From contig JBLDXI010000058.1 of NCBI GenBank assembly GCA_047495785.1, forward strand, positions 186,001 to 250,000: DNA of 64,000 bases, given 5' to 3'. Below the pieces are notes generated by a model. That model was not told where the DNA came from, ran no database searches, and saw only the letters and a list, made by a program, of their open reading frames with translations. Shown in pieces: positions 3,487-64,000 of this stretch. This DNA is from Lepidodermella squamata. Lineage: Eukaryota > Animalia > Gastrotricha. The first letter of the stretch is position 1, and every line of letters begins with the position of its first letter. Both the position numbers and the translations under genes were made by a program.

Positions 3487-6400
3487 ATGACTGAAAGACA
3501 AGCGCCTAAATTTCAATTTAGCGTGTTGCTACGAAAAGCGATCAAGGATGTCAACAAAATTGTAATAGATTTTTTATATTAAATAACCTACTATGCTGAT
3601 TATATTTTAGGAAAGCTGTGAGCCAACAAGTAATGGTGAAAGTTGCGCTGCGGTTGGTGCACAGAAGGACGATTCGGCAAAAGCTGCATCGCAATGCCAA
3701 GAAGGAGCAATGCATCGAAGAAACAAGTCTGGCTCTAATGGAGCCAACGAAATGAGCTCTAAGAAGAGGAACAAAACGAAGAATAAAGAGGACACGAATT
3801 CAAGACAGAACAAAAGTACCGTTATTAGTCCGTTGGCGGAATGCGACGTCGGCGTAAGTAATGCTGCAACAAATATCCCTCAGCAGGGTTCATACACTGA
3901 GTTATCCCCACACCCATCCGCCAAAGTAAAGCATAACCACAGCTCTTCCAAACGCCAGCCAAGAGTTTCGACTGGGCGATCATCAGAGAGCAAAGCTGAC
4001 GAAACACAGTCAAATGGCCACTCGGAGATTTCTGAACCTGTTTATGCAAGAAATGGACAGCCTAAGTTTAAAAAATCGTCTTCACTTGTGGAAACCACGG
4101 TGAAAATTGAAGAGAAAAATGCCGAGCCGTCGTCGAATTTCGAAATTGAGGCTACAGTAGAAGAAAAACCGGAACAGACTGTGAAGCAGTCAGAATCACA
4201 TAGGCTTGCGGAGGCAAGAGGACGCGCACGACATCTAGCCACTAATCATTTCAAAAATAAGAAAGCAGCCGCAACGGCCACTTCTGCGAATGGAAATCTA
4301 ACTCAACCGGGAGAGACTAATGCCGATCCGGGCCATCCTACTAGTGCTGATGCTTCTGCAATGTTTGAAGATGCGGCAGTCGGCTCTTCAGAATCCGCAC
4401 CTGCTTACAACAAGCGCATCAAGGTAGAAGAAAGTGATGATCCTTCCGAGGAGCAAGCAACTACATCGCAGCTTAACTCAACTGAAAAACCTGCCAAGTT
4501 TGTTGTTTTGATACAAATTTTTTAGTTGTCTCAACAGTTCTTTTCATACTTATAGGCCTCGCCGGTCACGATTTTCGGATATCGTGCCAGAGGACTATGC
4601 CAAGGTTGCGAACGCTTATAATATCTCACCCCAGCAATATCACACCCCAGAAAGCAGAAACAAACCGAATTTCTTTCGATCCGCAACAATAAGCCAAGAG
4701 TCAACTCCGAGTGGTCAGTTCACTAGTCCTCAAAATGAACAAGCTTACCAAGCCGCGATGGCGGCGCAACAGGCGGCTGCTGAGGATAGGTTTAGCAGAA
4801 CTTTCTGCCAGATGAATAGCCCCTACATCGACTCACATTGCCACTTGGATCTGTTGCTTTGGGAAAGGTTTGTTGTTTAGATCGAGGCCTGTTAAACAGA
4901 TTAATCGAACGTGTTCCTACAGGCATCGATGGCCCTCAACTTTTGAGCGATTTCGAAACGATAAGGTAGCAACCAGCTTCCCTCCGAACTTTGCGGGCTG
5001 CGTAGCTGTCTTTGCCCATCCTCGCCATTACGAAAGGAGCAGTAAGTTAGCAAACTTTCTAATTTCACAATTTTGCTGAAAATCTCACTATCAGTTGAGC
5101 GAATGATGGCTATTTCTCGCGAAGACTTTGTTCGAGCCTCGATCGGCTGCCACCCAAAGTGTGCAGCCCAAAATCAGTGGACCGAGCAGCTCGAGGCGAC
5201 CATTCGCCGTGCCGTGGCGACAGGTGGAACAGACCGCGTCGTTGCGATCGGCGAGTGCGGCCTTGACTATTCGCAGCCTAACTTTGCAATGGCTTCCGCC
5301 AAGCAGAAAGAGTCGTTTGTCGCGCAGATGAAAATGGCTATCGACCTGCAATTGCCTCTCGTCGTGCACTGCCGTGATGCGGAAGAAGACTGTTTGAAAA
5401 TAATGCAGGAAACGCTGCCTCATGATCACCCGATTCATCGGCACTGCTACACGGGCAACGTCGAAGAAATGCGTCGTTGGCACCTCGCCTTCCCTCAGCT
5501 CTGTTTCGGTTTCACCCCTGTTGCAATATGCAACAAGCCACCGTTCAGCGAAGTAATCAAGGCGGTTCCTCTCGACAGTAAGATAACTAGCTATTTTACT
5601 TTATTTTTCGTCCCAATAAGTTAATGTCTTTTTGAAAAAAGAATTGCCGTTAACTGGGGTGACTTGAGGCGGCTTCGTTTTAACAGGCCCCGAAGTTTAA
5701 TTAAAATAGAGATGTTTCAAAATTTTCCCGTAGAATATGAAATAAAAAATTAAACTGAAATTCTTTTCCTGTTATTATATGCCCAGAAATGGATTCTTAT
5801 TGATGCGCATTGTACACATCCAGACAGGCCTTTTCTTGGGCTATTCAACGGTGCCCCACTCACGGGTTCTTTACCTTTTCATCTTCGATTTTTGGTTTGC
5901 CAAAGTGACCTCATTTTGGCATTTCAAAGTGACCCCACTGTAAATTCGCCCCAGTTAACGGTATTTCGTATTCAAGATACATCGTAACTCGACATAATAT
6001 TGTCTTACGCGCACTTGCTTCGCAGTGCGACGTAATGGGCAGGTCCCAATTATTTTTCTTCCTGCTATCTGGGATCCTGAACTGACACTGAACGCTGAAC
6101 TCATTTGAACCTATTATTTCGTCCGAACCAGGACCAAGCGCATCGATTTTACGTTTCGAAATCAGTAATCTTCCTAAGCAGTCTTCCTAAGCAGTGTCGT
6201 AAGGCTTGGGACTCAGGGTCTCTGGGAACGACTTAGATAGGATATTACTCTTAACACTTTGGTGGTAAATGGCTCGACGTTAGGATAGGAATAACAGATA
6301 ATGTTTAAATGTGACAACGTTTCGGAAGTGCATGGTAGAATTGAGGCGGAGAAATGTTTCATCATTGAGATGCATTGGACAACTTCACTTGCACGCTTTC

Positions 6401-11466: not shown

Positions 11467-14400
11467 CTACTGATGATTAGCCCAGGGTGCCTGCAAGTTT
11501 GAGCGATGCGATGGCGCCGTCCATGGGAAGATGCCGCGCTGATGGTACGAAGCCGGCGGCTCTCGCGTCGATGTCGACCACAGCGCAGCTCGTCGCTCGT
11601 TATCGCGATCGCCGGTCTCCGATGCCAAGTGTGTCGCGTTCGCGCGATAAAAGTTGACCGAACCGTCTTGGTTGTAGAACGTCGCCGTCTCAAACTTTCG
11701 CCGTCGTTGCTGCTCAGCAGCCACGGCGGGATGAAGGGCAGGCCGTTCATCGCTTGGTGCTGCCATGGAACTCGCATTGAGGAATTCCGCTCGGCGTTTC
11801 ATCGCTTGCGTATCAAGTTCAGGCGCCTCTGCAGACTTTTCCATAAATCGCTGTAGACGCAGTCGACGCGTCACGTCGACAGGCATCCTGTCGTAGTTCT
11901 CGGCCGGCCGATCAGCAGCTGCAACTTCATTTTTGAACACCGGTGATAAATAATCTCGATCGAGCACTCCCGGCATCTGCTCGCTCTGCCCAATCTGCCT
12001 CTTAAACCGCGCGCGTTCTCGCTCTGGGGATGTTTCGAAACTTACGGTTTTCTGAGATCGCAGCGAGGCGCGACGTCGCAATGATGGCGGCTCAGTCGCT
12101 TCAACCGGGACGACAAAATCAGAAACCTGAGGCACGGCACGTCGTCGAACGGATTGGCCTGCTAGAAGATTGGGTTTCGCGACTAATGCACGGCTCACGC
12201 GGTCAGCAAAGGTCACATCATCGCGTTCGACGTAGCACTTGAGCTCAGGATTCCAAACCAAGTTGTGCTCGGCAAGTTTGTTCTTATCAGCCGTTTGACG
12301 TGGCAACGGCGCGCCGGTTTGAAGAGAAAAGTCGTCAAATTTGCGTCTTCTGTTCTTTCCCGAAGCATGAGCTGCTGTACCGCCTGATAAATTTCGAAAA
12401 GGTTCAGACGCGACGTCCGCTGTAATCTTCCTTGAAGGTTCAGCAATTTCTGCCACTGGAGACTGCCTGTTCGCCATCCACTCGAAACCGGTGGGGGCAT
12501 CTACGCCGAGTTCTCGCCGAGCGCCCACAGGCATCGACATCGGGTCAACCGATAAACCCTGCATCGATTGGGCTGCAGGAGACGGAGAACGGTTCATCAT
12601 TACCTCTGAGGGCAACGCCAACTGCTGCGATCGGGGCATTTGAGATGGCGCATAATCATAGCCAACTGGTATGGGCGAACTTGACGGGCTGATAGCAGCT
12701 GAATAATTTGAAGCCATGGGTTGCATTGATGAAACGGCAATAGAATTGGCGCCATAGGAATAATTGGAGCCTCCTTGCTGTGCCGTTGCAGAAACATTAG
12801 GATTGCTGGCGTGCGAATAATTTGAAGCTGCAGGCTGTAATGGAGAATTGGAAACAGGGCTGATAGCTATGGAATAGTTGGAAGTCACAGGTTGCATTGA
12901 GGGATGGCCCATGGAGATAGCATAATTAGAAGTCACGGGCGGTACTGAAGTAGCGGCCGGCATGAAAATTACATTGTCTTCGAATCGCTGATGAGCAGAT
13001 TGGCTATGCATAATGGTGGCGCCTGCCAAGTCTGTGATTTTCGGCGCCAACTCGCGACGTACTCTTTGCAGCTGAATAATGCTCCTGAAAACGATCATAA
13101 TTATTTCTTGTTAGCAAAATAAAATTCCATTCGACTTACGTGGCCGGTTTTGCTTCGAATGTTGTGTCAAATTCACCGGTATGAAGTGGTGGATCAGGCG
13201 GCGGCTTGATGAACTTCATACTGGCCAAAGCTTTCTGCTTGGCCTCCTCGATTTCATTGCGCTTCTCCTCGAACTTGTCCACATTACGCTGGACAGTTTC
13301 TTTGATTTTCTTCGGAGGAGGCAGCTAGGAAACAATAAACTCATTAATTATTCGGAGAGACAAATGATCATCGAATTCATAGTTATACCCTTATAACGCT
13401 AGGAATTCAGAATTAATCCTACAAGGCTTACCGGAGGAGGTGGTGGTGGCGGCGGCCGCGGAGGGGGAGGAGGCGGTGGCGGCGGCTGCGAAAAATCAAC
13501 ATTATAAGTAAATGTGAGGCCGTTGAGCCGAAGTTAATACCTTTGCCTTTGATTCCCGCTTTGGAGGTGGAGGTGGCGGTGGCGGCGGCGGAGGTGGTGG
13601 CGGCGGCTCTTTCTCCTCCTTAAAAATTAGCGTAAATTAAAAACTCCTCAAATTGACAACATAATGCTTGAAAAGCGAAAGGTGAGAATTTTAGGCGTGA
13701 GCATTATATGCGAAGCGAAAGGTTAAGATAGGCAGGGCCAGAATCAGCAGGGGTTATTCGGCCTACTTTTGCCACGCGATCTGATTTCGTTGATTCTCCC
13801 TTATTGGGCGCATCACGATGGATTTTCGCTCGCTTTATCTCTCCTTGAAGATATGATTCGTTTGGTTTGATGACAGATTCAGCCGGTTCAGCCTTCTTTT
13901 TAGTCACTGGAACTTCAGGTGGCGGGATAACATTAATTATTGGTTTTTCCTCACTCGGAGGTTGTTCGTGGCTTGATTTCAAACTCAAAGGTTTAGCCTC
14001 TTCCGGTCTCCGTAAAAAGGGAACTGCCACTTTTGGCTCTGGCTTTGAACGATCTTCTACGATGAGCTTTGCCGATATCTCTTTCTTTTGGCGCTGGGCC
14101 TTCGGCTCTTGTACAGTCGGTTCCTTGTGCTTGGAAGCTTTTGAATCAACAATTTCAGGTAAGCTTCTATGAACTGTAGGTAGCTTGGAGACAACTTGTA
14201 CAGCGGCTTTCGGCTCTGCAGCAATTGTTGCTTTCGGTGCTTTTGTATTATTTTCGGTTAATTTAGGTAGTTCCGGGCGATCCGGTTTCCTATTAGGAGG
14301 CGGGCGGACCTCTGCTTTGATTTCCGGTTTTGGCAACTCTGGCTTTACATCCTGAGGTATGCTAGGCTTTGGAGACGCCACCTGTGATTCTGATTTGAAT

Positions 14401-16728
14401 GTGACATGTTCTTTTGGGGTCACTCTGGCCTCGCGCGGAGATTTCACTGTAGGCAAGGAAGTCAAAGGTTTAGCCTCCTCAGGTCTCCGTAAAATGGGAA
14501 CTGCCAATTTTGGCTCTGGTTTCGAACGATCTTGTACGGTAAGCGTTACCATTTTCTCTTTCTTTTCATCCTGCGTCCTCGGCTCTTGTACAGCCGGTTC
14601 CCTGGGCTTTGGAAGCACAGCTTTCGTTTCAACAACTTCTGGCAAGCTTCTGTGAACTGTAGGTAACTTGGGGACAACCGCGGCTTTCGGTTCTGCATCA
14701 ATTGTTATTTTCGGTGCTTTTGCGTCCACGACTAATTTAGGTGGTTGCTGGCGAACCGGTTTTTCCTCAGGAGGTGGATGGGCCAACACCTCTGTCTTAA
14801 TACTCGGTTTTGGCAACTCCGGCTTTACGTCATGAGGTTTGCTGGGCCTTGGAGACACGACGTGCTCATTTGAGATCAGCTTAACCTCGCGAGGAGATTT
14901 TAATGCTGGCAAGGAAGACGGTTCCGGTAATTTAGCGCTAATTTTCATCGTTTGAATTTGCTCTGACTGCTCAGCTTTGGGAGGAGGCTTAGCAGGGGTG
15001 GCGGCCGTTTCTCGCTCGGATTTCGCGAGAGCGGGAGGCGGGAGTTTTTCATTCCTTTGTTCAGCTTTCACGGGTTCGGCAGGTTCTGGCAGCAGTTTCG
15101 CCCACTTTGTGGGTTGAGGCGGTTCAATTTTGACGACTATAGATGAAGAAGTTTCTTCGACTTTCGTCACTGCCGGCTTTGGTGCTGAGGTTTTCGATAT
15201 AACTATCGGTACTTCGGGCACAACCAGAGACAAGGGGGCGTTCGATGATACGCTAGTGCTAACAGTTTTCTCCTTTTTAACATGATGGGAAAAGCGGAAA
15301 ATTAATGAAAGCTGAAACCAATCACATTTTGTACTTAAAGCAGCGAAAAGCGCCAAATATTGTTAGCGTTGGCAGTATAAGTTAAGATTAAGCTGAATAA
15401 GCCATTCCGAGCAAGGTAGCATACTTTGGGCTCCACGGGCTTCTCCGGTTTCTTGGGCTCCACAGGTTTAGGCTCTTCAGGCTTTGGTGGAGGGGCAGGT
15501 GGCTTAATCACAACTTTTGCCTCTGCTGGAGGAGGTGCTATTGGATCTTTTTTCGGTTGTGGAGGTGAAGGTTTAGCCAACTCAACTTTCGCAGCTGGCT
15601 TCTCTGAGGCAGCGTCAATCTTTACCTCAGTTTTCTTCGGTTGTTGTACTGGTGGCGCAGGGGCAGGCGGCTTCGGCTGTTCAATAGGTACAGTTTTCGG
15701 CTCAGGATCTTTAAGAACAGCCTGCGCGGGTTCAGCCTTCTTTGGCGGAGGGACTGGTTCAGCCTTCTTTGGGGCGGCAACTTGTTGAACCTCTTCAGCC
15801 TTCTTGGGCGGAGGGGCTGGTTGAACTGGTTCAGCCTTCTTCTCGATTAGGGGCGGCGGAGCCTCAGATTTCTTTGGCGCAGGGGCAGCTTCTTTCTTAG
15901 CATCAGCTTTCTCAGCTGCTACTACAACCACAACCGGTACCACAGGAGCCGGTTTCTGCTCTTTCGGTGGCGGCAACGGCGCAGGAGGAGGAGGAGGAGG
16001 AGGAGGAGGCTTCTTTTCCTCCTTGAAATTTGGAAAGTTGTTTTAAACATAAAAAACGAAATAGGAAATCTCAAATAAGACAGAGGGGTAAAAGGAAGAT
16101 AATCGCAATAAATCTGTTCACGAATGCGGTATAAATAAAAATAATTGATTAATTATTACCTTGACTTCAGGAGGTGGAGGTGGAGGAGGAGGTGGAGGTT
16201 GCGCCGGCGGTGGTGGTGGTGGCGGCGGCGGTGGAGTTTTCGGTTTCCGTGGCGGCGTTTTAGGCTTCGGAGGAGGCGGTGGAGCCGGGGCAGGAACAAC
16301 CGGGGCCGGAGGAGGTGGGTCTGGAGGTGGAGTTTTTGGTTTCTTCAAGGGTTTTTGCACTGGTGCTGGAGGAGGAGTTTTGGCTCTTGGCGGAACAGCA
16401 GCGGGCACCGCAGTCGTTTTGGCTTTTCGAATGCAACAGCAGTAAAGAATGAGCAAAAGCACAGCTGTTAAAAGAAATCGCGAAAAAATCATAGACAAAA
16501 TGCCTGAGGGTTATATTATTTGAGTTTACCGAGCAATAATACCACCAGGATTGGCACAAGCCAGACCTCGAGTGGGGGTAGAAGCCGCCCATCTGTATCG
16601 TCCCTTCCACCGGCAGCGCCAGCAGCTGGACACCAGAGCCATACAGATCCTCGATAGTCCACATAGTAAAGTGGCACGTCATCAGACGTACTGTCGAGGC
16701 GGAAGTAAGGATCTCGACTAGGTGCCAT
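11467..16728 (-). CDS. Orphan single-pass membrane protein A (~1510 aa; short N-terminal ectodomain, TM+CCC, polyproline/PEVK-like tail)
   Basis: Eight exons join in frame via GT-AG introns: 16728-16530, 16464-16160, 16021-15425, 15272-13767, 13618-13541, 13485-13432, 13324-13140, 13084-11467. TM is VWLVPILVVLLLAVLLLILYCCCIRK. No signal peptide. Confidence 0.8.
12690..12945 (-). repeat. Five SNY-containing peptide repeats in the last exon of protein A
   Basis: PPVTSNYAIS, QPVTSNYSIAIS, QPAASNYSHAS, QGGSNYSYGAN, QPMASNYSAAIS. Confidence 0.75.
13988..14916 (-). repeat. Tandem duplication of ~155 aa inside exon 4 of protein A
   Basis: Two copies of KSPRE...DVKPELPKP...KAPK.TI.AEPKAAV...KLPTVHRSLPE...EP.VQEP...DRSKPEPK.AVP.LRRPEEAKPL. 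Confidence 0.9.
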
Positions 16729-17590
16729 CGACGATGATCGTCGAGAGGCGATATCAGCCTTTAAGTTGACATTAACCTGATTATTTCGGCCAACTAGTTA
16801 TTTACGAAAGATAGGAATAATCATTCATAAGCTATTTTATTGTAAAAAACAAAGAAGCACTGAGCCATTTTAAGAGGTCTGCAGCATGCTCAAATAAGCC
16901 ATGCAAGCACTATGATGCCGGATAAGGTCGCACCCTTACAAAAGTAGAGCTCCGTTTCCAAGAAGTCGAGCCTAGAAACAAGCTCTACTAATTTAAAAGC
17001 GGAAGTAACTAGTTGGACCGGGACAAGGCTACTTGCCGAATTTTTTCTGCAAAAATTAATCGAAGCGCGAGCCGTATAGTTGACTAATAATATGTCTTTC
17101 GGCTCGAAAAAATCGAAGCACTGCTCGTTTCCGCACAAAAAATGCGCTTTTCTTGCAGAAACACCTTGTCTTTTGACACACTCAGGGGACCAGCGATAAA
17201 ATAGTTTGATCACCACTCGCAGGGGATTTCAAGTTAAAACGACGCTTTCCTGACGTCCAAACGTCACTTAGTAGCTAAATATTTTTTTCATTTATCAGCT
17301 GATTCTGACGTGCATGGCCGCGGTACTTCCCATTTCATATCGCGTGGCGTCTGCTACCATTCACCTGCTATCAAAACGTGACTCGTTTCCAAGGAGCTGA
17401 AAGGCGATGCTGCTGAATAGGAACCATCAAAGAGGATAACTTGGCAATTAGCAAAAACGCACTACGTATCATCAGCAGTATTTATTTTAGTTGACCTCGC
17501 AATCAGGTTATTAGCAAAGGGATAAAAATAAAAATGGCGACTTTCTGTACGGTTATATCATTTCATGGGAGGAAAATTCGAATAAAAATA

Positions 17591-20500
17591 TCAGCTCCAA
17601 GGGAAGCAATTGTTGCGTTGATAGCCCTGCATAGTAGGGCTACTCGCATGAAATCTTCTGATCTCTCTGGAGTTGTCGGAACTGTAAACGGGAGAAAAGG
17701 ATCGCAGAAGGCGGCCGACGTTATCATGATTCCTCACATTTGGCAATCGATTTGCGAAGCTTTCAGTAGGAGGGCATTTGGTTGTTAAATGGCGCCTTCT
17801 GCCCAGTCCCAACATCAAACTACTTTGAACATTGTCCGAATATTGAGTAGAAGTTCCGAAAGCGTCACGAGGCTGAGAAATAGCTCTGTCCTCGGCCAAG
17901 AGCCGAGACTCATTAGGTTTGACACGGCGGTTATGAGTATTTGATTTGAAAGATTCCTCTTTGGACTGAGCAGGTTCTTCATGTTTAGAGAAAACGTAGT
18001 CCTTTTGCAATTGAGCTCGATCGCTGTAGTACGCCTCAAAGCGAGGCGATTGGTAATTAGTTGTTCTTTTGCTGGTATCAATTTCAGTGACTTTTTTCGT
18101 CAAATCGTGACGATCCCGCTGCTTCAACTGATAGCCGCTTGGTGACGTACGGAATGGAGGGAATATTATTTTCTCATCCTTCCGATCCATTTTCTTCGGG
18201 TACCAATCAGGTGGCCGCTTGATCAAATCAGGATGATCTATGCCTTTCTTCATTTGTGCTTGATCGATCTCGGGTCGCTGTTTGATTCTAGAAGGTCTGT
18301 CATTTTCAAGTTTTTTAGGCGGTGGCATTCGCTCAACGCTGGACTGGAGAGTCTTCTTTGATCGGTTATGATTAATGACAACGGAGTTGCCGGTATCGGA
18401 CTGAACTTCTTGATGTAATCTTGGCCGTTTCGAAGCAGGCTTCTTATTGACAATCTCATCGGTATCACGCATCGGCGAAATCGAACGCTTTTTCTGCGCA
18501 TTCGGCAATTGCTGTGGTTTAGGGGCGAAGAAAGAATAATTGTCTTTCCGTGCAGAATTCGGTTTTGCTCTTGTAGCTATACTCCTCGGGCTGGAAGCAT
18601 TTTCTTTCACTAGTGGAAGCTTTTTCACCAATTGATTAGGTGGTGTAGGTTTTACAGGCTTAACATTATCATTTGAAAAGTTGCTCGTTGCGCCCCGATC
18701 ATTTGGTTTCGGAGGTTCTTTCTCCGATAATTTCCGAGTTTTTGCAGGTTGCACGGGTTTGGCTTCGATTGGCGGTCTAGAGCGCTGTTTCAATTCTCGG
18801 ATTGGAGGTAAAACCTGCTTCTCCTTAACATTGTTGGCATTCATTACTGGTCTGTTTTCATCAGGCATGGGTGGCTTGCGAACTTGAATGATCTCAGGAA
18901 GACGTTTCTGTTGACTCTTTGATAATGGCAACCTCTGGACGTCAGCCGGTTTTGTCGTAGGTTTCTCCTTAGGTTGAGGTCTCGGTTTAGGTAGTTCGTA
19001 ACTGGTCATCGGGGTTTGCGACTTCTTGACATCAGCCGGCTTTGTCATTGGTTTCTCCTTAGGTTTTGGCGTCGGTTTTGGGGGTTCGGAACTGATCATC
19101 GTGCTTGGCGGCGCTTTCAATCCAGGCACAGGATCTGCTAAACGTCTAGCTGGGTCGCTAGTAGGTTTAACGAGGGCTATAGGTTTTTCTTTCCATGGAC
19201 GCTGTAGCATCGTGATATTCTCCTGAGGATGGATCATTGGTGCATCAATGGAGCTGGAGAGACTTTCATCAGGCAAAGCGAGGCGCGGAACTGATGGTAA
19301 TTCAGGTTTAAGGCTGAGCTCTAGTGGAGAGGAGGATTGAATAAGTGGTGGCAGTTTCACCTCCTTTTGGGGCTTCATACGAGGCGCTTCATTTGGAGTT
19401 GATTTTTCTTCCTCAGACGCGGCAAGAATAGGACTTGAAGACTTGGGAGGTACTGTTGACGGTTGATTTACTTCCTTAATTTCTTCATGCTTCACGTGCC
19501 TTGTTATTTCTGGTTTATAACTCAAGTGCTGCTCAGTGATCTTCGCTGCCACCATTGACGCAGAAGTTTGCACTGTTTGAATTGATGCTACTGTAACAGC
19601 TTTGCTTACGACAGTTGAGACCAATTGGAATTGAGCTAAGGGAGTTATATCGATAGTTGAATCCAATAAGACATTCGTCAGGGCATGCTCTTCCGACATT
19701 AACAGTTTCGGGCTGCTGATAAAAGCTGCAGTTGCTGGCGCTTCCTCTTCCGGTGGCTCGAATTTTGACACTACTGCTTGTGTCGGCTTATCCGGCTCAG
19801 TCATTCTAGTCGACTTATTTGTCACATCCTGCTTCTTTTCCTCTTTCAGGAGCTTTTTCGAACCGGTGACATTTGCCTTTGATTCAGGTCTCGCCTTAGG
19901 TTCGGCATCATCCGCTGATTTTGCCAACGACTGTTTTGAAGTGGCAACAGGCTAAAAGGAAATCAATATCGATTAGCTAATAGGTATATTGAATATCTTA
20001 GCTTACCTCAGTCTTTTCGATCGCAGTTTTCTTTTCTGGGGCCTTTTGTCCTTTCTGTGAGTTGGTCTTCAGCTTTTCCCTGGATTCTTGGTCCAGGGGC
20101 TCGGCTTGGGGCTTGGGAGAGATTGCCTTTGATTCAGGTCTCGTTTTAGGTTCGGCATTAGGCAAAGGTTTTGCCTTCTTGTCTTTCACGTCTTCTTGAG
20201 TCTGTGGACGGGATTTGGCTGGATCCTGCTTGGCTGCTTCAGGTTTCACGCCAGGTATTTCGGCGACTGGTTTTGCAGCGATCGGCTCGTTGATTTTTCC
20301 AACAATAGTGGGTATAGCTTTCGCTCCTTCACTAAGCTCCGATGGCTGAGGGGCTGCTGCTGATTCACTGTTCCTTTGAAGATTTTCTGGTTGTTTCGGT
20401 TGAGTGGCCTCCGGATTTTCAGGCAGATCTGCTTTGTTCGCCTTGTTCGACCTATCAATCGGTTCTTCAGCTTTCGCGACGGGTATGTTTGGAGTATCGG

Positions 20501-23114
20501 TTTGTTGCTGGGGCTTCTTGGCTTCGATTTCCTGCTTTTGGTTTAGAGTGTCTATAGAGGTCGATTCTTTCTTTGGTTTTTGTTCGGTTGTCGGTTCTTG
20601 CGAACGATTCAATTGAGGAAAATCCTCTCCCTTGGCTTCTCCACGCTGGGAGAAGCTCGGCAAGGGATTGTGCTGTATTGATTGCTGCAGCGAGATGTTC
20701 GCTCGATCCAGCAACCCAGAATTGTTTACTGTGTTCACTGACAATTCAGTAGCAGATGTACTAACCATAGTCGGAACCAATTGGAACTGAGTTAAGGCGG
20801 CTATGTCAATAGCTGACTCCCTGAAGACATCCGATGTGATAATCTTTGCAGAAGCTAATGGCTTCGGGCTGTCGACAGGATCCGTAGCTTTAGCTACTGG
20901 CTTCGCCGTCTCTTCGTTGCGTTCAACGACTTTTGGCACTTCATGGTAGCGCTTCAACGGCTGCTCTGAGTGCTTTACTCGGTCCATTTTCGCTAGAATT
21001 TCTTCCTTTGCAACAGATGCTTCAGTAGCCACTGCACTAACCAAGGTTGGTACCAAGTGGAACTCAGCATTGGGTGGTATGCCGACCGTCGATTCCAGAA
21101 AGCCAGTCGGCTTCACTATGTTTACGTTGGTCGATGCTTTAATTGCTGAGCTAGTGTTAATAGATTGGACATTTGATTTCGATGGCTCATCGCTTGGTTT
21201 ATCTGGTACGGTTTTCGCCTCGGCTTTTGGATCTGATCCAAGATCAAGTGTCCTCGCATTACCGTCGACATTGGCTGGTAAGCTCGCCTTTTGTTGTTCA
21301 ATTTTCGATTTTGGGCGGTTCGTTTTCATCGTCTTTTCTGGCGACGGTGGACCTGAGCGTTTTGAGCCCGTTTCCTTCAATTCAGGCTTGTCTGTCGTTT
21401 CGCTGCTGACTCGGGTCGCCTTTGCCTGAGGAACTTTCGGCATTTTCTTTGCCTTTTCCGGTGACGGGAGATTCTGTTTTGATGGTAGTTTAGTGATTAC
21501 CGAGTCTCCTACGCCAATGGAAACCCTTTTTATTGTCACTGGCTGGGGCGATGGCTCATCAATGATGTCTGGCTTTGCGGCAATAATGGGTTTTGTGATT
21601 GGTGTTTCTTGCACTTTCATGCGCTTCTCTTCGATATCTGGGTTTGTTCGAGCGAAAGCCATCGCCATAGGTTGAGGCTTATGTTCAATCGGGTTCACGT
21701 CGATCCTAGCGACTCGAGTTGGAAAGCAGCACGTGAGACAAGATGTACCGGAACTTGAAAGGGTAGATGAGCCTCTTATTAGATCAGCAGTATTAACCGG
21801 TGATTTCTCATCTTTGGGAGGCAGATTGCGGATTTCTGAAGTTGCTATCTGCACCGGTTGGGAATCATCACGTCCTCGCACATCTCGAAGAGATCGCTGT
21901 TTTTCAGCAGATGATGGCTGTACCTGGCGCGATGTCGAGGGCTGCTCATCAGCTGCCTGCGCTGTTATAACTATCGATTTCTGCGAGGTAGATTCATGCC
22001 GCTTGTCGATTTTTCGAGGTGATTTTGGGCTCGATGGAACTGCTGTTGGCAAGCAGCTACAGCAAATAAATTTGGTTTTATGGGAATCGTCAAGCTGCTC
22101 ATCTTGAACTTCTTTGGGAGATAGAGTGCGGATTTCTTGAGTTGCCATCTGCACCGGTTGGGAACCATCACGTCCTCGCACATCCCCAAAAGGTAGACAG
22201 CAGGCGCAAGCGCTGCCTCGCTGTTTTTCAGCTGAAGGTGGATGTACCTGGCGGGATGTCGAGGGCTGATCATCTGTTATCTGCTCTGTTATAACAAGCG
22301 ATTTCTGCGTAGTAGATTTAGGCCGCTTATCGGTTTGTCGAGGTGATTTTGGTGTGGATAGAGCTGCTGGTGATAAGCAGCTACAGCAAATGAATTTGGT
22401 CTTTCGTGAATCGTCAGGCTGCTCATCGTGAACTTCTCTGGGTGACAGAGTGCGGATTTCTGAGGTTGCAACCTGCACCGGTTGGGAATCTCGAAAAGGT
22501 AGACAGCAGGCGCAAGTCCTGCTTCGCTGTTTTCCAGCTGAAGGCGGATGTACCTGGCGCGATGTCGTCGGCTGATCGTCCTTTATCTGCTCTGTTATAA
22601 CAAGTGATTTCTGCTTATCGCCTTGTCGTGGCAATTTCGGGCTCGATGGAGCTGTTGGTGATAAGCAGCCACAGCAAATAAATTTGGTTTTATGGGAATC
22701 GTCAAGCTGCTCATCGTGACCTTCAGGTTTGTCTTGAGCAGGACGCTGCCGCTGCCTCTCCCCTCTCTCAGCAATCGATTCAGTATTGTCAGTAGTCTGC
22801 CGCTTTTTGTAGCAACAGCAATAGTACAGGATTAGGAACAGCAACAAGAGAATGAGTACACCGAATATGGGCGGTAAAACTTCGTAAAGTTTCACTGAAG
22901 AAGAAGAAGAAGAAGATGATGATGATGATGAGCCGGTTGCCAGCCAGGATCCCCTGCCATCGCTTGGCCCTCCTCCATTCGCGGCCAATAAGGAACAGTT
23001 GCGCCTTTGAAGCATAAAATAAGATAGAGGGCACCATTTCCGTAAGACTCCATCATCGTCGTAGGCGTAAACCGGGTAATATCCATTCGTATCGAAGTAG
23101 CGAATCTCAAACAT
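17591..23114 (-). CDS. Orphan single-pass membrane protein B (~1820 aa), putative paralog of protein A
   Basis: Two exons, 23114-20007 and 19951-17591, with a 55-nt phase-0 intron. TM is VLPPIFGVLILLLLFLILYYCCCYKK. Long P/K/E/S-rich tail ending in FPWS. Confidence 0.82.
21815..22720 (-). repeat. Three tandem ~100-aa Cys-cluster repeats in protein B
   Basis: Unit EQ(L/P)DDS(H/R)KTKFICC(G/S)CL...QKS(L/I)VIT.Q...QP.TSRQV.P.SA.KQR...(CACCLPF)...SQPVQ.AT.EIR, with high nucleotide identity between copies. Confidence 0.92.
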
Positions 23115-24121
23115 GTAAGCTTTCTTTCCAAGTTAGAGCCATAATGTAAAGGTAAAGTCAGTTTTCTGTAGTGAAATCTGCCTAATTCAGAATTCTACAA
23201 ATGCGCTGGTCACCATATCGCTCATGCACTGCGACTATTATTCGTATACTAGTTTCGCTTATGCGCGTTGCGAATTACAGGGCGCGGCAGTGATTTTCGC
23301 TTCTTGCCGGCTTCCTGTCCGAGAGCTGCGCGCTACGATGCAAGCGCTTAGCAACGCATTAGTAATGCATTGACCCCGGAGGTTTGTTTATTTGTGAAGA
23401 AAAATTCAGCGCCGTTGGTTTAGCAACACTTTATATTCATCATGCTTCCTGCCTGTCAGCCTTCACCCTAGACTTCCATAAACTTCTAACTATAGCCAGT
23501 GATGGATTTTTTACAATAATTGGAAACTTCAAAGCTTCAAAGACTTTATCGGGAAACACAAACTATTTTTATCTCACGCTCATCAAGAAATCCTCGCATT
23601 TCAAAGTGAATAGTTTCACCTCAAAAATAGAGGTTCCAGCTCTGAAATGTTTCGATTCCTCGAAAGTTTGACTTCTAGGTACTTTCCATGATAGATGTTG
23701 ACGCCCCCTCCACCTCAATGACGTTGGATTTTATATTTTAGCTACGACATCAGACAAATTACTGATTTGAAACATCGATAGTTGGAATCGATATCGGCTC
23801 TGCAGACTGATGTTATGACTCGTAAAATGAGTTAGGCGTTAGGCATGCTAACAGATTCTTGGGAAGACCTGACTCAGGAAACTTTAATGCTTGAACCCTA
23901 AATTTAGGGTAAGCCAGCATTTCTAACCCATTACCAACAACAACATGATCGTCCATTTTATTTCAAAGCAAGCATTAGAAGTTAATCGGGTTATCATTTC
24001 AACTGCTTCAACAATTACTGGTCCAATAAAATCTCTCCAAGGTAAAAATATAAATCGACATCTCATTGTTGTAGCTTAACAAACTGATAAACCTGATGAG
24101 TATCTACATATGATTATGAGG

Positions 24122-27100
24122 TTATTCCATCAACATCCGATCTTTGGATTTCAAGCCTACGGGTGGCTTTCTCGCGGATGAAGATTCGCTGTTGGCCGCT
24201 GCTGCCATCTTGGCTTGCATAAGTTTGTTGGGCACGCGATGAGCGATCGGCACGCTAAGGTTCGTCGTCGAGCCGCCAATTGATTTCGTCTCTTGTTGCA
24301 GCGCATGGGCATGCGAGTGGGGTGCGGTGTGGTTGGTCATGGCCGTCGTTGGGATAGAGTTCTGATGCTGGTGGGACGATATCGTCGCTTCTTGCTGCAC
24401 CCGAGGCTGTTGCTGGTTATGCATAGCGTTGTACACAGCAAGTCTACCGCCAGTAATCTCGCACGGCTCTGAATCTACGGCAACCTCTCTCCTATAAATA
24501 AAAAAATCATTAAACAAGGTTAAATGAAAATTATTTTTAGCAGTAATACCCGCTGTATACAGTAGTGCCGATATGAGCGATGTCGCCGGTTGCATGGTAA
24601 TTTTTAACAGTTTTCGTATCTCGAACTCGGCTAGCATCAACCGCTAGAAGTTGCCGCTGTTTGGCAACAACTAGTGCATTGTGCCGACTAGTTCTAGCGA
24701 CCAGATCGGCGTAGCGTTCGAATGACCTTTGCCGCAGTCGCTGGTTCATGCTGATCTGCTCATAGTACTGTGCCTCCTCCGTTAACAACGCCTGTTCTGT
24801 CGCATTAGCGGCGTCTTTTTGCTCAGATATCACCAGGGTCACTTTCTCGCCGGCTATTACGCTGATCAGTTGCAGCATGCGAGCGTCCTCCTCGGTAGGC
24901 TCAAAGTTATCGACTCGCATTGCTGCGATCTCCTGCGCTACGGTGTGCCATGTGTAGCAGGTCAAGTCATCCAAATAATGATCGATCTCGGGCCGGGTCA
25001 CGTGGTCGTCCGAGGTAAGGCCTGGCACGTCGTTCCAACCCAGCCGAAGGAAAATAGCGTGGATTCTAGAGCATAGAACACTTTCAGGTGACTCTACAGA
25101 CGCTTCCAATTCTTCGTCGAATCGAGGTTTTTGACTGCGTTGACGGCGCCACATTTCACAGAAGAGATGCGGAGCCGTTATGCTACGCTTTCCGCGCCAA
25201 GCTAGCAAATGTCGCACAGATCTTGGGTTATCCAGTAAATCTGTATATAAAATAACGTCATTAGGAAAAATCAAGTACGCCTTCAAGGTTGAATTACCGA
25301 CAAGACAGCCCAACGCTACTTCGGCTAGCGCGGCGGCGGAGGAGCTGTTCGTATCTTCCTTCGCCCAGCTTGGAACTTCTTCTGTAGAATCCTCGCCCGG
25401 AGATGGTAAACCTTCGTGCATCAACTGGATCAAATCAAGAAGCGCAAAAATGCTGCCGTTTTCCAGCAATGCATCCTCCGTTATATCGCTGCCAATACCA
25501 GCACTCCATAAGCAATCGAGAGCGGCTAGAAGAAGCCGCGAGTGGCCGAGTCCTGAAGACAGCCGATGTGGAGTATTTCGCAGCAATTCGCACAGCAAGG
25601 TGCATCCGTCAACGCCGAAAAGTTCGCGGTTATGAGCCGCGTTGTTTGTGTTGCCCGATGAACAAATAAGTGACAATGCCAACAAAAGATCTGAAACAAT
25701 TTCAACTGCAATCGCCTCCTCTGTACTGCCCGAAATGCTCTTGTTTTGTGAAACAGCTTCAGACTGCTGACTAATAATGGCACGGATTACTCGAAGAACA
25801 GCTTCAATGGCACCTTGGTCCACTAGATTTTCAATAACTGCGGCTGACCCAGCAGAATCAACCTCTGATATACAAGCTAATAGAAGTCTGGCGCAATATC
25901 GAAGCTGCGCTCTCTTGGATTTGTAGCCACCTGTCCCATAGAAACTGTTACCAGATCCTTCGTAAGAGGTGCTGCTAGATTCATCAGCAGACCAATCCAG
26001 CATCAGTAGGATTCTCGTGGGCAGCCGGCACTCGATTACATCAGCAGGAAGCAAATGCGCGATTTCAGCTAATGAGGCTATGGCATGGAGCTGAATCTCT
26101 TCTCTCTGAGCTTCGCTCCATTCGCGTTTTCCAGGTGGGGCCCCGGCGCAAACGTAGACTGAAAAGGCTGGAACAACCCCATTTGTTGACAGCAAATTAC
26201 GTGTGTGGATGTCACGGCTGTCACAAGTTGGTAATTACAAGCATAAGATCACGCGAAAGAAATAATGCTGTAATGACCTACCTTAGTAAAGCAACTAAAT
26301 TGATGAACAGTTTTTTCAATTCAAAATCTTCGCGATTATTGGCAACAGCGAGAATTGATTTTCCTCCAAGTTCGTCCGTTGTGGCCAGCTGGAGAATACA
26401 GATGGGATATGAGCGAGCCCCGTTAAATTAAATGGATGTAAAAAATATACCTTGAGCATTAGTTGGGCAAAACCCGTTTCTAGAAAGGCAGCCGATGGCT
26501 TGTATTTAGCAACCAGGCTAGCGAGCACGATGGCGTCGTTTCTAAGCTGCCTTGATGCGGCTGAATGGGGGCGATGCAGGTGATAAACGAATAATGAGTT
26601 TAGAGGTTGCAATGATTCTGAATCTGATAATTGATCGACGAACGCCAACAAAGGGTTAAAGTTGAATTCAGCGAAATTTCCATTGTAGGTCATATCATGC
26701 ATATTCCAAATTATTTCGACAGTACGGAAAACCGGTTCAGAGTCAAATGGCCACTGAGAAATGCGTTTAACCAAGAGAGCTGCCGCGCCACTTTCAAGCA
26801 ACTTGCAGCAAATAACTCCTAATGGTGGAAAATATGGTGTCATGCATTCTAGAAAAATAACATTAAATTACCCGATTGTTTAGTGAGTTTCTGCATCAAT
26901 TTTATAACAAGGAGTTCCGTAGAATCGGTCAAATCAAATGAGCGCATCGCCTTAAAAAATAGAAGGGTGTAGAATATTCAGGATTCAGGAAGTAGATAAT
27001 TTTTGCGACAATTACCGTGATTAGGCGAGCTGCTGCGCCGCTACGTTCAATTATGAATCTATTGTACAGCAGAGAACATCTCTGAGTCGCTTGGTAGGTT

Positions 27101-32616: not shown

Positions 32617-33994
32617 ATGATTAGCAGAACGGTTTTCGTAATCTTCACATGTTTTATTGGTATGTTTGAAATTTTTGTTAATGATGTCTTTAGCCTATAA
32701 TTTTTTGCTAATTTAGGCACCATTTTCGCCTGGCGCTGCGGAAATTTGACAAAAGAGAATACGGGCTGGGAGATTTTTGCTGACGAATCTAGTGGTCATT
32801 GCTTCTCGGTCATCGACAACGAATTGCACTGGGAAGAAGCCCATATCCAGTGCACGAATATTCGAGGCCCCGCTGGTCGACGGGGCGAAGGCAACCTAGC
32901 GAGCTTTGACACGGCTCACAGTCTGATCGCTGTTCGAGAATGGCTGCGACAGATCAAGTGGCATCGAAACGGCGTATGGATCGGCGGGAAGCGATGCAGC
33001 TCGTCTCCTAACGGCTTCTGCTGGGTCGATGAGACCCCGCTTAATCGATTCTTGCTATCGGATTTTTGGGGCCCGGGTGAGCCTAGTCGCAAGACGGCGT
33101 TATTTTTCGATGCTGACTGTGTCCAGCTGAGATCATCTGCCAACTGGCGAGCTTTTACAATGCCGTGCCATACCAGCAAGTGGCACTATTCCTTCATCTG
33201 TCAATTCCCTATGTTGCCACTCACGACTACGACTTCGACATCAACGAAAACATCCACTACCACTACGACGACAACATCCACAACCACAACAACTCCGTCT
33301 ACAACGTCGACCACTGAATCGCCGTCGGCTCTGGGCATGCTTTTCAACAGGTTTGACAATCGCAACAAGCAAACGACCCCGGAGGTTGTTGACCCGAGTA
33401 TCGCAATGGCCGTCATGATGGCGCGTGGTTTGGGCTCCTCGACAACCCCGCCCGAAGTTGAGCAACGGGTCAATATGCTGCTGGTCGGGCTCCTCGCTGG
33501 ATTCGGTGGCGCCGTGCTAATTTTGTTGTTCGTGCTGTTTTTCGTCGTCCGTCGCTGCCGGCCTAACCCGTCGCCCACCGTCCAGGTTATTCTGACGCCA
33601 GAAGCACATGGCCTAGGCTTGCCCGATGCTGTGCATTCGCAGAAATCATCTGCTTTTTCGAGGAAAAAGAGCGAGGAGCTTGCGCACAATCACGAAGTTG
33701 AGATGGTCATGAACAGCAAGCGGCACCCAGTTATGAGTATGGCTGCTCTTGCGGCGCTAAATCAAACTCCGCCTAGATCGCCTCCGCCGGCATATCGCCC
33801 GATGGGTAAGTTAACTCAACCTGGCCAATCTCTGTCATTCAAGTTTTCTCATTTTTTTAGCTAACCCTGACGAGAACGTCGACCGACCTCTTATACGAAC
33901 TCGCGATGTCCCAAATCGCAGCATTGTTGTTCTGGCAAAAGAAGGCACCCAGGCAGCGACGGACAACATATACTCAGTGCCCGAAGCTCTTTGA
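32617..33994 (+). CDS. Type I membrane C-type lectin domain receptor with a mucin-like Thr stalk
   Basis: Exons 32617-32659 (signal peptide), 32717-33805, 33861-33994. CTLD motifs HCF, WEEAHIQC, LAS, WIGG, WGPGEP, CVQL, FICQ. Then a poly-T stalk, TM LLVGLLAGFGGAVLILLFVLFFVV, and a tail with PPPAY and NIYSVP. Confidence 0.88.
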
Positions 33995-34884: not shown

Positions 34885-35435
34885 TCATTCAGATTTAGTC
34901 ACTTCTTCCAAATAGGCGATGAGATCTGCTCTTTCTTGGGCCTTGCGGAGACCTAGAAATAAGAATTTATGACAACTTTCACCCTGATAGGCACGACACA
35001 GACCTGAAAACATCATTTTCGTCCCGGGAATGTAGCGTCTTGGATCAGCCAGATACCTGATAAAAACGTAAAAGAAATCCGTTGACTGGCCAGAATGAGA
35101 AGCTTACATATCCATGGTTACTGCAGTCCAAACTATCCCTGACGGTGGAATAAAGATGAACTGAAAGCCTAGCTCGATGCTAAATTACCTCTAGACTTGT
35201 TAGCTTCGGTGTAATTGTATCCTGGAGCCTCGCCCGTTTTCCGTCCGAAAATCCCATGAAGATTCGGCCCCTGTTTGTGAGGCCCACCCTTTTCAACTGA
35301 ACACCCATAATTTGATGAGGAAACTCAAAATTAAAAGCACCGCTGCATACCTGTGTGACAGAGACTACATCTTATCATGAAAGCTCGCTTTCCCCGTTCC
35401 AAATCAGGTTTCTCCAATTCAGCTTTATCCGACAT
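34885..35435 (-). CDS. Divergent cytochrome c paralog (5 exons)
   Basis: Exons 35435-35351, 35296-35189, 35138-35108, 35056-35004, 34952-34885 give [114 protein letters not shown]. Missed by the ORF track. Confidence 0.93.
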
Positions 35436-36092
35436 ATTCTACACGTAAAATACCGAAAAAATGAGAGACTGGATCGCGAAGGTGAATCAGTTTTATTTCC
35501 TTTTGAATCGATAAATTTTGCGTTATAGCATATAATTATTTGATATCTCAGTGTATCAGATAGCTTTCATTCGGGCATAGTGGCTTGGGCTCGAAAGTGT
35601 GAGCACAAAAATACGAATAATAATCATTTATAATACGTAAGCATCACCAGGAAATTTCGATAAATAGCGACACGCCATCAATTTACTTTCCTAGTAAAAT
35701 AGTTCAGATTCACCTTCGTTCGGATTACAATCAGTGTAGCATTATCACGCTAAACTCGAGAAGGAAGAATAATGTAGGTGCGGAACAAAATGCGGAACAA
35801 CCTTATGTCAGATAAGATGTGTCTACTTCTTTAGTCGTGAAGAGAAGAGTTCATCTCGGCCGCTAAAAATAATTTTACCAATTTATCATCGGATCATCAC
35901 CTTCGGCGATTAATTTAAAACGAAACCACAAACACACACGCACGCACACGCTCATCCGTATAAGCGATTGAATTGAAACATACTAATCACGGCTAGACTA
36001 AAATAGTAAGTAAGGGATCTATCTCTTTAGTTATATTTGTCTCTCAATGGCAGCAACAATATAGGTCCTCTCTTCAACAAGTTTTAGTGCAT

Positions 36093-36484
36093 TCAAGGCT
36101 TGGTGGCCTCCTGGAGGTACGCGATCAAATCAGCGCGCTCTTGGGGCTTCTTCAGACCAGCGAAAACCATCTTGGTGCCAGGGATGTACTTCTTCGGGTC
36201 TTCGAGGTATTGGAACAGCGTATCCTTGCCCCAGGTGATTCCCTTAGCCTTGTTGGCGTCGGTGTACGAGTAACCAGCAGCTTGGCCAGTCTTGCGACCG
36301 AAGAGACCATTCTAAATCAGAAGAATTTACAGCTATATTAAAGTTTCAAAGTAAGGAATAAGCAATTTACAAGGTTGGGGCCAGTCGAGTGCTTGCCGCC
36401 CTTCTCAACGGTGTGGCACTGGGCGCAACGTTGAACAAAGACCTTCTTGCCCTTGACGGCATCGCCAGCAGGAACTTCGGCCAT
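36093..36484 (-). CDS. CYCS: Canonical cytochrome c
   Basis: Exons 36484-36371 and 36311-36093 give [111 protein letters not shown] 5'UTR intron at about 36513-36952 is likely. Confidence 0.97.
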
Positions 36485-37207
36485 ATTGACTGTGAATTTA
36501 AAGAATTAAGTCCTAAAAATGAAAAAAGCCATGAGTTACATGAAGAATTCACTTTCTCGCAATATTTTTGTTTTAAATTAAAAGTACAAAAAGAACATCG
36601 CAACAATCAATCATAGTTCATCAGTTGATAAGATAGGAGTAATAAAATTGGAGCAACTTCAAGCAAAAAATGTACACAAATCGATCATTGTTGGATTAAT
36701 CAGCAATAGACTAAAGCTAAAAAAAATGAAAAATGTTGGCGTTAACTGCAAGCATTTTTGATGGTATATTTTGATCAATTATCAACAGCGCAACTATGGC
36801 ACCGTAGCTGTTGAAAGATCCCGCTTTTTCTGATTTTTTTTCAAATTTTCTCATCCGCACCATCAACAACAAAAAATTGAACGCAAGACAAAATTTCAGC
36901 CAATTATTTGCATCCGTGATTCATGAGGCAAGCGCTCGATCCTAACATTTACCGTGTCTGAGTGCGAGTGGCATGCAGATAACATTTATGTACACGAAAA
37001 GAATGAATGAATAAGAATTGAGCCAGTCAAGTAATCTTCAACGTGAAAACGCACAAGAATGACTGATACGCGACTCGTCATTTTAAATGACACGCCATGG
37101 ACGCGAGTTGGAGAGAGAGTTCGGCTGTAAACACTAGCACCAAGTGTTATAGATGGCTATACAATAAGACATGAGGGATTTCGAGATAATTTCAAAAATT
37201 CGTCGTT

Positions 37208-62288: not shown

Positions 62289-64000
62289 TCAAATCCGCGA
62301 CGCTGATAGAGTCACGCCGCCGACCGACACGTCATATGGGTTTTGCTGCTGACCATTCGGCCCGCTGTATGCGACTACAGGGGGTCTCCCGTTGGTTCCA
62401 GCCGGCGTGGTCGGTTTCGCTGATGAAAATATGTTCCTTGCAGATGCGAAGGTTCGCCGGAAAAATTCACCGCTGTCCGCGAGAAGACGAGCCGGGCGAT
62501 GTTCCACCAGCCATATACCTGCGCGAGAACCCGGGTGACGATGGGCGTAGACCACCCATCCCACGCAAAGACCGACAGCAGCGAGTATCGCCAGAACGAT
62601 AAGAATTATAAGAATCGCCCAGGCGCCGCCGGACGTTGATCCGGAGGCGGAAGAGCTAGAGTCAGATGATGCCAGCGAGGTCGGCTGGGAGAACAAGTTG
62701 ACACCCTCTCGTTGACTGAACGGCAGAGCAGCACAATCGATACGCTGCGTGACATTCTGAACATCACATTGGGCGTCCATCCACGATTTGCGACCTCTAT
62801 CGAAGCCGAAAGAGCAGCGCCGTAGGTTGGGACACCAAGCGCATTTGAAAGCCAGGTTTGGGGCTGGCGTGAGACAACTGGAGCATGTGGTCAACTGGAT
62901 GCAAGTTGGCAGCGGAGTCATGACAACGGCAGATCGCGACTTCACCCATTCGTTAGGTATCCGAGTTTCCGAATAGACGTGCATAGTTTGGAAGCTCGTC
63001 CCGGTAACGCCATCTTTTCGCTCGGAAGAGTACGCATCTGATAGGCTAATCTGTGGTTTCAAATCAGGGGTTTAACTTGATTTCTAGATAAACCGAGCGA
63101 ATTTACCTCAACAGGGTGTTTTGATTGTGAAATTTGAGAAATGCTTATCTGAATGATCATAATCAAGTTGAATAGATGCAGTGATAACAAAATACTCACC
63201 GGTATGTCTTTGTATGCAAATACTATCCGCCCATCGCGATAAATGTGAGTTTGGAACCGGAACGGGATACTTGGGCTCTCTTGTAAGACAACGTCTCGCC
63301 ACTCAACAACGAGCATCGATTCGTTCGCGAAATACAGGAGCCTATCGCTAGAGGAAAGGCTGAAATCGAAATTCGCCATGAGGGGTGCGATGAACTGCGA
63401 GAAGGTGAGTAATCTAGGATTCAGTACCTGAGAGAAAATCATATACATTTCTCTTCTCAACCATCGGCGAAATAGAAGACTTACCTCCCCTACATAGATG
63501 AAACCACCAGTTGCGATGACAACACGCTTTACTGGGTGGCCGTAGAAAGGAAATGTGAACTTCAAATCAACAACGGCTGCTGTCCGGTAAGAAACGGAGA
63601 GCTTGTCGTGAGATAGAGCCAAAACATTGGAAACATTAGTCGGGACAGAGCTTGGAACTTTGCCGAAATATAGCTCAATCCATAAGCGGTCGAAATCGTC
63701 AAACAGTTGAGTTGTGTAAAAAGTGTGCGGGTCTACGATAGGCAATGGTGTAGTAGTCGATGATGAAAGGCTCCAAGTGGAAATTGCAGGATTGGAAGTC
63801 GTGGTGCTGGAGGCTAAATTGGTTTCGTTTATTGCCGAAGAAGTTGAGTTATTGCCTGTTTCCACTACGGCCTGTCGCCGATTTCGAATGTTCACATCTG
63901 AAATGAAAAAACGCATGATTGGACCGCGATTGTAAAAATGTATTGCTTACTTGAGAAATCTTGTTGCACGCTAAGAATGTCGTACGAGTCACCGAGAGCA
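62289..64000 (-). CDS. PLXDC2: Plexin domain-containing protein (PLXDC1/2, TEM7-like), 3' part
   Basis: NIDO-like F.FPFYGH...IATGGFIY.GE...QFIAPLMANFD, LSDAY, PSI PLPTCIQLTTCSSC...CAWC..LRRCS.GFDR.R..W...C, TM followed by YAHRHP.S..G..L.E.RP. Confidence 0.9.

Follow-up and report, generated by a model that had tools for sequence, protein, structure and literature searches.

What kind of protein is encoded by two very long, adjacent genes that resemble each other only in a few short islands and nothing else in the libraries searched? This question is raised by a pair of minus-strand genes in a 64,000-nt window (the whole stretch of DNA that was analysed, from contig JBLDXI010000058.1 of the gastrotrich Lepidodermella squamata). 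Gene 1 covers positions 16728-11467 and specifies ~1524 amino acids (aa), gene 2 covers positions 23114-17591 and specifies ~1822 aa. An earlier interpretation made without database searches, called here the sequence-only reading, had described them as giant membrane proteins derived from an old duplication. We found that both are real coding genes and, as judged from their alignment, diverged tandem paralogues. The reading that we prefer, and to which we give about an even chance of being correct as a whole, is that they are so far confined to this lineage and encode single-pass membrane proteins without signal peptide, with the N-terminus outside (N-out), a CCC motif of the palmitoylation type and long cytoplasmic scaffold tails.

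Gene models and paralogy

The open reading frames (ORFs) underlying the pair comprise 1038 and 778 codons, and the introns are canonical (GT..AG) with a length of 55-65 nt; very short introns are a general feature of the host genome. Gene 2 consists of two exons (Table 1). Its head and ~930 aa of its tail are contained in a single ORF, so that no splicing is needed to join them, and the possibility considered in the sequence-only reading that N-terminal exons are not connected to the tails does not arise for this gene, in which head, transmembrane (TM) helix, CCC and ~930 aa tail form one ORF. A 53-nt repeat with 83% identity between its copies (family D14) is present on both sides of the gene 2 intron, at 19873-19925 and 20123-20175, which is consistent with gene 2 being one gene. 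Upstream of gene 2 we noticed a short ORF of 11 codons on the minus strand (23125-23160, ATG GCT CTA ... TGA) that overlaps the start codon of gene 2 in a different reading frame; it may serve in translational control or be meaningless. Gene 1 is more fragmented, with eight putative exons and introns of 55-148 nt. No separate start codon is available to exons 5-7. Like exon 3, exon 5 opens with EEK[KE] and then poly-Pro, and it resembles exon 2 in its 3' end and donor (family D5). Both the missing start codons and the likeness of exon 5 to exons 2 and 3 argue that these downstream exons are part of gene 1.

The similarity of the two genes had been described as three conserved islands, namely (i) an N-terminal motif in the head, (ii) the TM helix with the following CCC and basic residues and (iii) a near-terminal motif ending in FPW. 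All six motif strings quoted for them were recovered on the minus strand where they had been placed. For island (ii) this holds with a qualification: the gene 2 string is contiguous at 22803-22886, but the gene 1 string exists only after removal of the 65-nt intron (16529-16465). The heads (island i) align with 15 identities in 50 positions (BLASTP E=0.009, single comparison). In Smith-Waterman alignments against 5000 composition-preserving shuffles, an equally good score was reached by 7/5000 for the full ectodomains and by 17/5000 for the first 30-35 residues, so the N-terminal similarity, for which the sequence-only reading had suggested such a test, is modestly above chance (shuffle p about 0.001-0.003). 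A far stronger signal was obtained for island (ii). The first 30 residues of gene 1 exon 2 and residues 79-125 of gene 2 gave a score of 59 compared with 19.3±4.1 for shuffled sequences (0/5000), and with most of the TM helix removed, starting at the Tyr before CCC, the score was still 51 compared with 17.7±4.0 (0/5000). The match continues beyond the cysteines as Y-CCC-x-[KR]-K-x-x-T-T, and the CCC codons are identical in both genes (TGC TGT TGC). In a tblastn search with the gene 2 head against all six frames of the window, gene 1 was the best non-self match (sum E 1.5e-5) with two colinear high-scoring segment pairs (HSPs) corresponding to islands (i) and (ii); the next match had an E value of 0.24. 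As islands (i) and (ii) are jointly above chance and colinear, paralogy can be regarded as established, and the old tandem duplication that had been proposed is supported by the shuffles of both islands together with the colinear match.

Island (iii) is unproven. For the FPW 9-mer to rank first, the comparison has to be restricted to the final 40-100 residues (6/2000 to 28/2000 shuffles); when the whole last exons are compared another 9-mer outscores it, and the best 9-mer is equalled by 52/300 shuffles. It was not recovered by tblastn of the window, and its distance from the stop differs (22 residues in gene 1, one in gene 2). Unless the comparison is restricted in this way the island is not statistically distinguishable from chance, which weakens the idea of a C-terminal docking motif. 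No significant alignment was found between the two tails, in agreement with their description as unalignable. Neither motif nor tblastn searches detected a third copy in the 64-kb window, and a comparison of the two genes for repeats at the DNA level yielded intragenic repeats and low-complexity GGN runs only.

Could the whole resemblance be an artefact, in that the islands arose by chance or low complexity, or that the head exons and the FPW-bearing last exon of gene 1 belong to separate transcripts? The failure of the FPW island to rise above chance would fit such an explanation, as would the modest BLASTP value of the heads, the weak donor at the exon 4/5 junction, where the exon 4 frame ends in TAA at 13706, and the fact that the exon joins of gene 1 were deduced from sequence alone. 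It is contradicted by the juxtamembrane block, which no shuffle equalled, by a two-HSP match that is colinear and the best in 64 kb, by the single ORF joining the gene 2 head to 930 aa of tail, and by gene 1 exons 5-7, which lack a separate start and of which exon 5 takes up the pattern seen in exons 2 and 3. We judge an artefact to be improbable.

Head, membrane helix and tails

Each protein contains exactly one strongly hydrophobic segment, and for gene 2 AlphaFold2 (AF2) models a helix at residues 80-114 with a predicted local distance difference test score (pLDDT) of >=90. Both N-termini are hydrophilic, the ATG directly precedes the conserved motif in both genes, and in-frame stops are located 9 and 24 codons upstream, which makes a signal peptide unlikely unless there is an unseen upstream exon; its absence had also been noted in the sequence-only reading, and neither N-terminus is indeed hydrophobic. 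The charges flanking the helix are asymmetric, with K/R versus D/E counts of 2/4 on the N side and 3/0 on the C side in gene 1 and of 1/0 and 3/1, respectively, in gene 2. By the positive-inside rule an N-out/C-in orientation is predicted from these flanks, and the earlier proposal of a single N-out TM helix is accordingly borne out, as a prediction, by the one hydrophobic segment, the AF2 helix and the charges. The heads in front of the helix measure 50-77 aa between the two genes. Two independent single-sequence AF2 runs gave a beta-hairpin at aligned positions of both heads, in gene 1 formed by LYYV/VWLW (residues 20-23 and 29-32, pLDDT ~78) and in gene 2 by the strands YPVYAYD/LRKWCPLS (residues 12-18 and 24-31, pLDDT about 50-58). 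The conserved Cys of the W-C-P motif follows the second strand, and a further Cys of the gene 2 head is part of an N-C-S sequon.

The opposite, type II topology would leave the head in the cytosol and expose a Pro/Ser/Thr/Lys-rich tail to the outside or the lumen, where it could form an elastic tether or part of the matrix, similar to mucins or PEVK regions. The tails are S/T/P-rich and contain N-x-S/T sequons (gene 1, 4; gene 2, 13), as one would expect of such a protein; however, the sequon count is about what the composition predicts (rough estimate), both paralogues have flanking charges from which the positive-inside rule predicts the reverse orientation, the Lys+Glu content of 16-29% is unlike that of mucin domains, and the hydrophobic CCxC/CxCC triplets and poly-Pro runs of 8-15 residues are typical of cytosolic proteins. 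A type II arrangement seems unlikely to us.

The tails, 1450-1700 aa long, are basic, rich in Pro, Lys, Ser and Glu, and assembled from internal repeats. Composition was calculated for exons read in frame other than the last exon of gene 1. Disorder-promoting residues account for 60-100% of the tail exons measured, and these exons lie on or below the charge-hydropathy boundary, so that the composition is of the disorder type, as had been assumed for a long disordered tail. The net charge is positive in the three correctly framed pieces (+20, +48 and +12). Seven poly-Pro runs with lengths of 5, 10, 10, 9, 15, 9 and 8 are found in gene 1, exons 2-6 of which also contain numerous PxxP sites of the SH3 type, and gene 2 has no poly-Pro tracts. 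In gene 2, the ratio of nonsynonymous to synonymous substitutions (dN/dS) between copies of the ~102-aa repeats is 0.41-0.56, which suggests that their cysteine triplets are kept under mild purifying selection. A CLTCCFP site is also present in this gene, as is the motif ...[AT]-[EQ]-F-[QH]-LV-[PS]-T... in three copies, the third of them in exon 2. The five ~19-aa tandem repeats in the last exon of gene 1 (12679-12966, minus strand) each contain ...QP-x-x-SNY-[SA]..., and the two RRRKF[DE] motifs are situated further downstream.

Basic tails built from K/P/E-rich tandem repeats behind an N-terminal anchor without signal peptide would also be compatible with the same architecture in an internal membrane (endoplasmic reticulum or another organelle), the protein acting as a tether to microtubules, ribosomes or a polyanion in the manner of p180/RRBP1, kinectin or CLIMP-63; p180 and kinectin are likewise N-anchored with long basic or repeat regions. 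In contrast to these proteins the composition is not of the coiled-coil type, no sequence or profile match to p180, kinectin or CLIMP-63 was obtained, and the conserved head with its Cys suggests an exposed or lumenal function. We consider this an alternative of low probability. It is the charge asymmetry together with the cysteine and poly-Pro chemistry that favours the interpretation given at the outset over its rivals.

According to this preferred interpretation each gene would give rise to a type III single-pass protein whose head faces the outside or a lumen and whose remaining sequence lies in the cytoplasm. The juxtamembrane CCC, which in this orientation would occupy the usual position for S-palmitoylation, would be S-acylated, the small exposed head may dimerise via the single conserved Cys of W-C-P, and the long tail would be disordered and serve as a multivalent scaffold held at the membrane. 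Poly-Pro ligands of the profilin/SH3 type would be offered by gene 1, and gene 2 could be pinned to the bilayer over its first ~470 aa by up to seven further hydrophobic cysteine triplets. A bolder version, in which a lineage-restricted giant type III family combines a disulfide-dimer ectodomain, a palmitoylated CCC and a scaffold of >1400 aa, with one paralogue FH1-like without FH2 (a profilin/SH3 platform) and the other stapled to the bilayer, is in our estimation not likely to hold in full.

A number of points weigh against the preferred interpretation. Taken by itself, the similarity of the heads is weak, with 30% identity in 50 aa, and AF2 models them with low to moderate confidence. The chain of eight exons in gene 1 is a putative one, its weakest link being the exon 4/5 junction with the donor GTAGGC, without which the exon 4 frame would run into the stop mentioned above. 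As gene 2 has no poly-Pro, the two tails may not have a common function, and the cysteine triplets of gene 2 could instead be metal-binding. Finally, an orthologue of either gene was not found in the libraries searched.

Search for relatives and comparison with known systems

For the spliced models, searches were run exon by exon. Pfam scans of all exon pieces and the heads, with E values up to 10, yielded only sub-threshold matches over the TM/Cys region. These comprise the plant cysteine-rich domain PF22812 (20.7 bits, cut-off 34.1; poly-Ser, TM and CCC only), the orthoreovirus p10 family PF07204 (13.5 bits, cut-off 21.4; TM region only) and adenovirus E3 CR2, PF02439 (16.7 bits, cut-off 36). 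All three fall within residues 60-106 of gene 2, with none over the head and none to gene 1. Membership in the p10/FAST-type family and in the plant cysteine-rich family was rejected, both matches being below the gathering cut-off. A full HMMER search of gene 2 exon 1 against 1.84 billion representative proteins returned 0 matches at E≤0.001, and a word-index search with the gene 2 head (residues 1-125) and the last exon of gene 1 found no relatives. In the ESM Atlas nothing scored above 0.84 for the gene 2 head and no usable match was returned for the gene 1 last exon, a profile search of the PDB with the alignment of the two heads gave TM noise only (E 0.38 or worse), JGI metagenome scans with both paralogues were without a match, and a literature search produced nothing useful. 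Two further readings of the head were also discarded. The YYV[DN]...W-x-P-like pattern recalls a WW domain, the hallmark of which is a three-stranded sheet with two conserved Trp, but no Pfam match was obtained up to E 10 and AF2 gives a two-stranded hairpin only; an FXYD-like head was not supported by Pfam either.

The statement that the proteins belong to no recognisable family thus agrees with the results from Pfam, the PDB, the ESM Atlas, the word index, HMMER and the JGI metagenomes. How much this absence means depends on how well the lineage has been sampled. The integrin ORF of the window has one relative with 75% identity, and all named animals reach <=38%, from which it follows that the lineage is barely represented in databases and that the orphan status of the pair is not surprising. 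For the integrin beta relative (70-75% identical) the sole source is a pair of ENA metagenome contigs, ERZ23486764 scaffold_2630 and ERZ27332993 k141_8999, which show that a sister organism of the host is present in environmental metagenomes. These contigs have only the integrin and cytochrome c genes in common with the window. Their gene order is otherwise different, with wnt, GPKOW and MARVEL upstream and a G-protein-coupled receptor and a ligand-gated channel downstream, and neither contig contains an orthologue of gene 1 or gene 2. Because sampling is thin and the tails evolve fast, the lack of relatives means that the family is unplaced and does not imply that it is unique. The earlier suggestion of an undescribed family has to be weighed with this in mind: relatives are missing from the libraries searched, but the lineage is very thinly sampled and no third member or orthologue has come to light.

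Among known systems the closest architectural parallel is provided by the vertebrate transmembrane adaptors LAT, PAG/Cbp, NTAL/LAB and LIME, which lack a signal peptide and in which a short N-terminus is exposed, a single TM helix crosses the membrane, a juxtamembrane Cys motif is palmitoylated and a long disordered cytoplasmic tail serves for docking. The pair shares the predicted type III arrangement and the juxtamembrane Cys followed by basic residues. It differs in having heads of the length given above with a conserved hairpin and WCP, tails that are 5-8 times longer and built from repeats, and CCC in place of the CxxC of the adaptors. Pfam scans of all pieces gave no match to the LAT, PAG, NTAL or LIME families, and tyrosine motifs are sparse in the tails (1-4 YxxΦ per exon, no NPxY), which sets them apart from the SH2-docking tails of adaptors. 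In the N-terminal module of synaptotagmins, likewise N-out without signal peptide, a cluster of palmitoylated cysteines and basic residues come after the TM helix, and the pair matches this module in helix, cluster, basic residues and predicted topology; in contrast to synaptotagmins, no C2 or other Pfam domain is present in any exon and there is no significant sequence similarity. A cluster of synaptotagmin VII N-terminal fragments appeared in the ESM Atlas feature search at 0.82, below the usable level. On sequence grounds the pair belongs neither to the transmembrane adaptors nor to the synaptotagmins. With p180/RRBP1, kinectin and CLIMP-63, in which an N-terminal membrane anchor is followed by a very long, basic and repeat-rich cytoplasmic region, the pair has this general layout in common, but no homology was found and the head, the CCC and the poly-Pro runs are foreign to that group. 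The seven runs of 5-15 Pro in gene 1, separated by short charged spacers, resemble the profilin-binding tracks of formin FH1 regions; unlike formins, gene 1 has no FH2 or other catalytic domain in Pfam, and such runs are absent from gene 2.

The design is thus a variant of an already known architecture in a family that is unplaced. If the preferred interpretation is true, the pair would be an invertebrate case of a tiny exposed head, a palmitoylated anchor and a very long disordered cytoplasmic scaffold, a combination of which most other known examples are vertebrate immune adaptors. It would also illustrate fast divergence of tails, with only ~60 residues still recognisable after duplication. 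The practical value is limited, as orphan status is to be expected in so thinly sampled a lineage.

Features of the pair and neighbouring genes

The positions of all parts of the two genes are collected in Table 1.

Table 1. Parts of gene 1 and gene 2 with their positions in the 64,000-nt window
Feature	Position	Strand	Description
Gene 2 exon 1	20007..23114	-	uninterrupted ORF from ATG, 1036 codons: N motif, poly-Ser linker, TM helix, CCC, ~930 aa tail
Gene 2 N motif FEIRYFDTNGYYPVYAYDDDGVLRKWCP	23028..23111	-	predicted beta-hairpin
Gene 2 TM helix, then YYCCCYKK	22803..22886	-	hydrophobicity, AF2
Gene 2 repeats, 3x ~102 aa with cysteine triplets	21807..22739	-	FICC[GS]CL in 3/3 copies, CACCLPF in 2/3
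Gene 2 intron	19952..20006	-	55 nt, GTAAGC...TTTTAG, phase 0
Gene 2 exon 2	17591..19951	-	786 codons + stop; end ...YQRNNCFPWS*
Gene 2 YQRNNCFPW	17597..17623	-	one residue before stop
Gene 1, eight putative exons	16728-16530, 16464-16160, 16021-15425, 15311-13767, 13618-13541, 13485-13432, 13324-13140, 13084-11470	-	
Gene 1 exon 1	16530..16728	-	MAPSRDPYFRL...; N motif (16627-16710), Gly-rich linker, first half of TM helix
Gene 1 intron 1	16465..16529	-	65 nt, GTAAAC...TTTTAACAG, phase 1, splits TM helix
Gene 1 exon 2	16160..16464	-	second half of TM helix, YCCCIRKAKTT, Pro-rich stretch (runs of 5, 10, 10 Pro)
Gene 1 exon 3	15425..16021	-	opens with EEKKPPPPPPPPP, then P/K/E-rich (PEVK-like) stretch
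Gene 1 exon 4	13767..15311	-	two ~160-aa repeats (period 477-483 nt), K/P/E/S-rich
Gene 1 exons 5 + 6	13432..13618 (13618-13541, 13485-13432)	-	55-nt intron between; poly-Pro runs of 15, 9, 8
Gene 1 exon 7	13140..13324	-	LPPPKKIKE...
Gene 1 last exon	11467..13084	-	538 codons + stop; five ~19-aa repeats, two RRRKF[DE] motifs
Gene 1 YHQRGIFPW	11521..11547	-	22 aa before stop

Judged by their ORF products, the neighbours of the pair in the window include an integrin beta chain, CFAP69, Paf1, a major facilitator superfamily (MFS) transporter and a TM7S3-like protein. Four neighbouring ORFs had no exact sequence match in the protein collection. Pfam gave no match for three other ORFs, 271-372 aa in length (3710-4525 and 32746-33864 on the plus strand, 63059-63916 on the minus strand). 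The gene for CFAP69, a cilia/flagella-associated protein, adjoins gene 2 on its upstream side and shares its strand (24122-26195, minus), and its presence indicates an animal with motile cilia or flagella. Just downstream of the integrin beta gene there are two cytochrome c-like copies (34891-36505, minus), and one cytochrome c is found at the same position on the 75%-related metagenome contigs.

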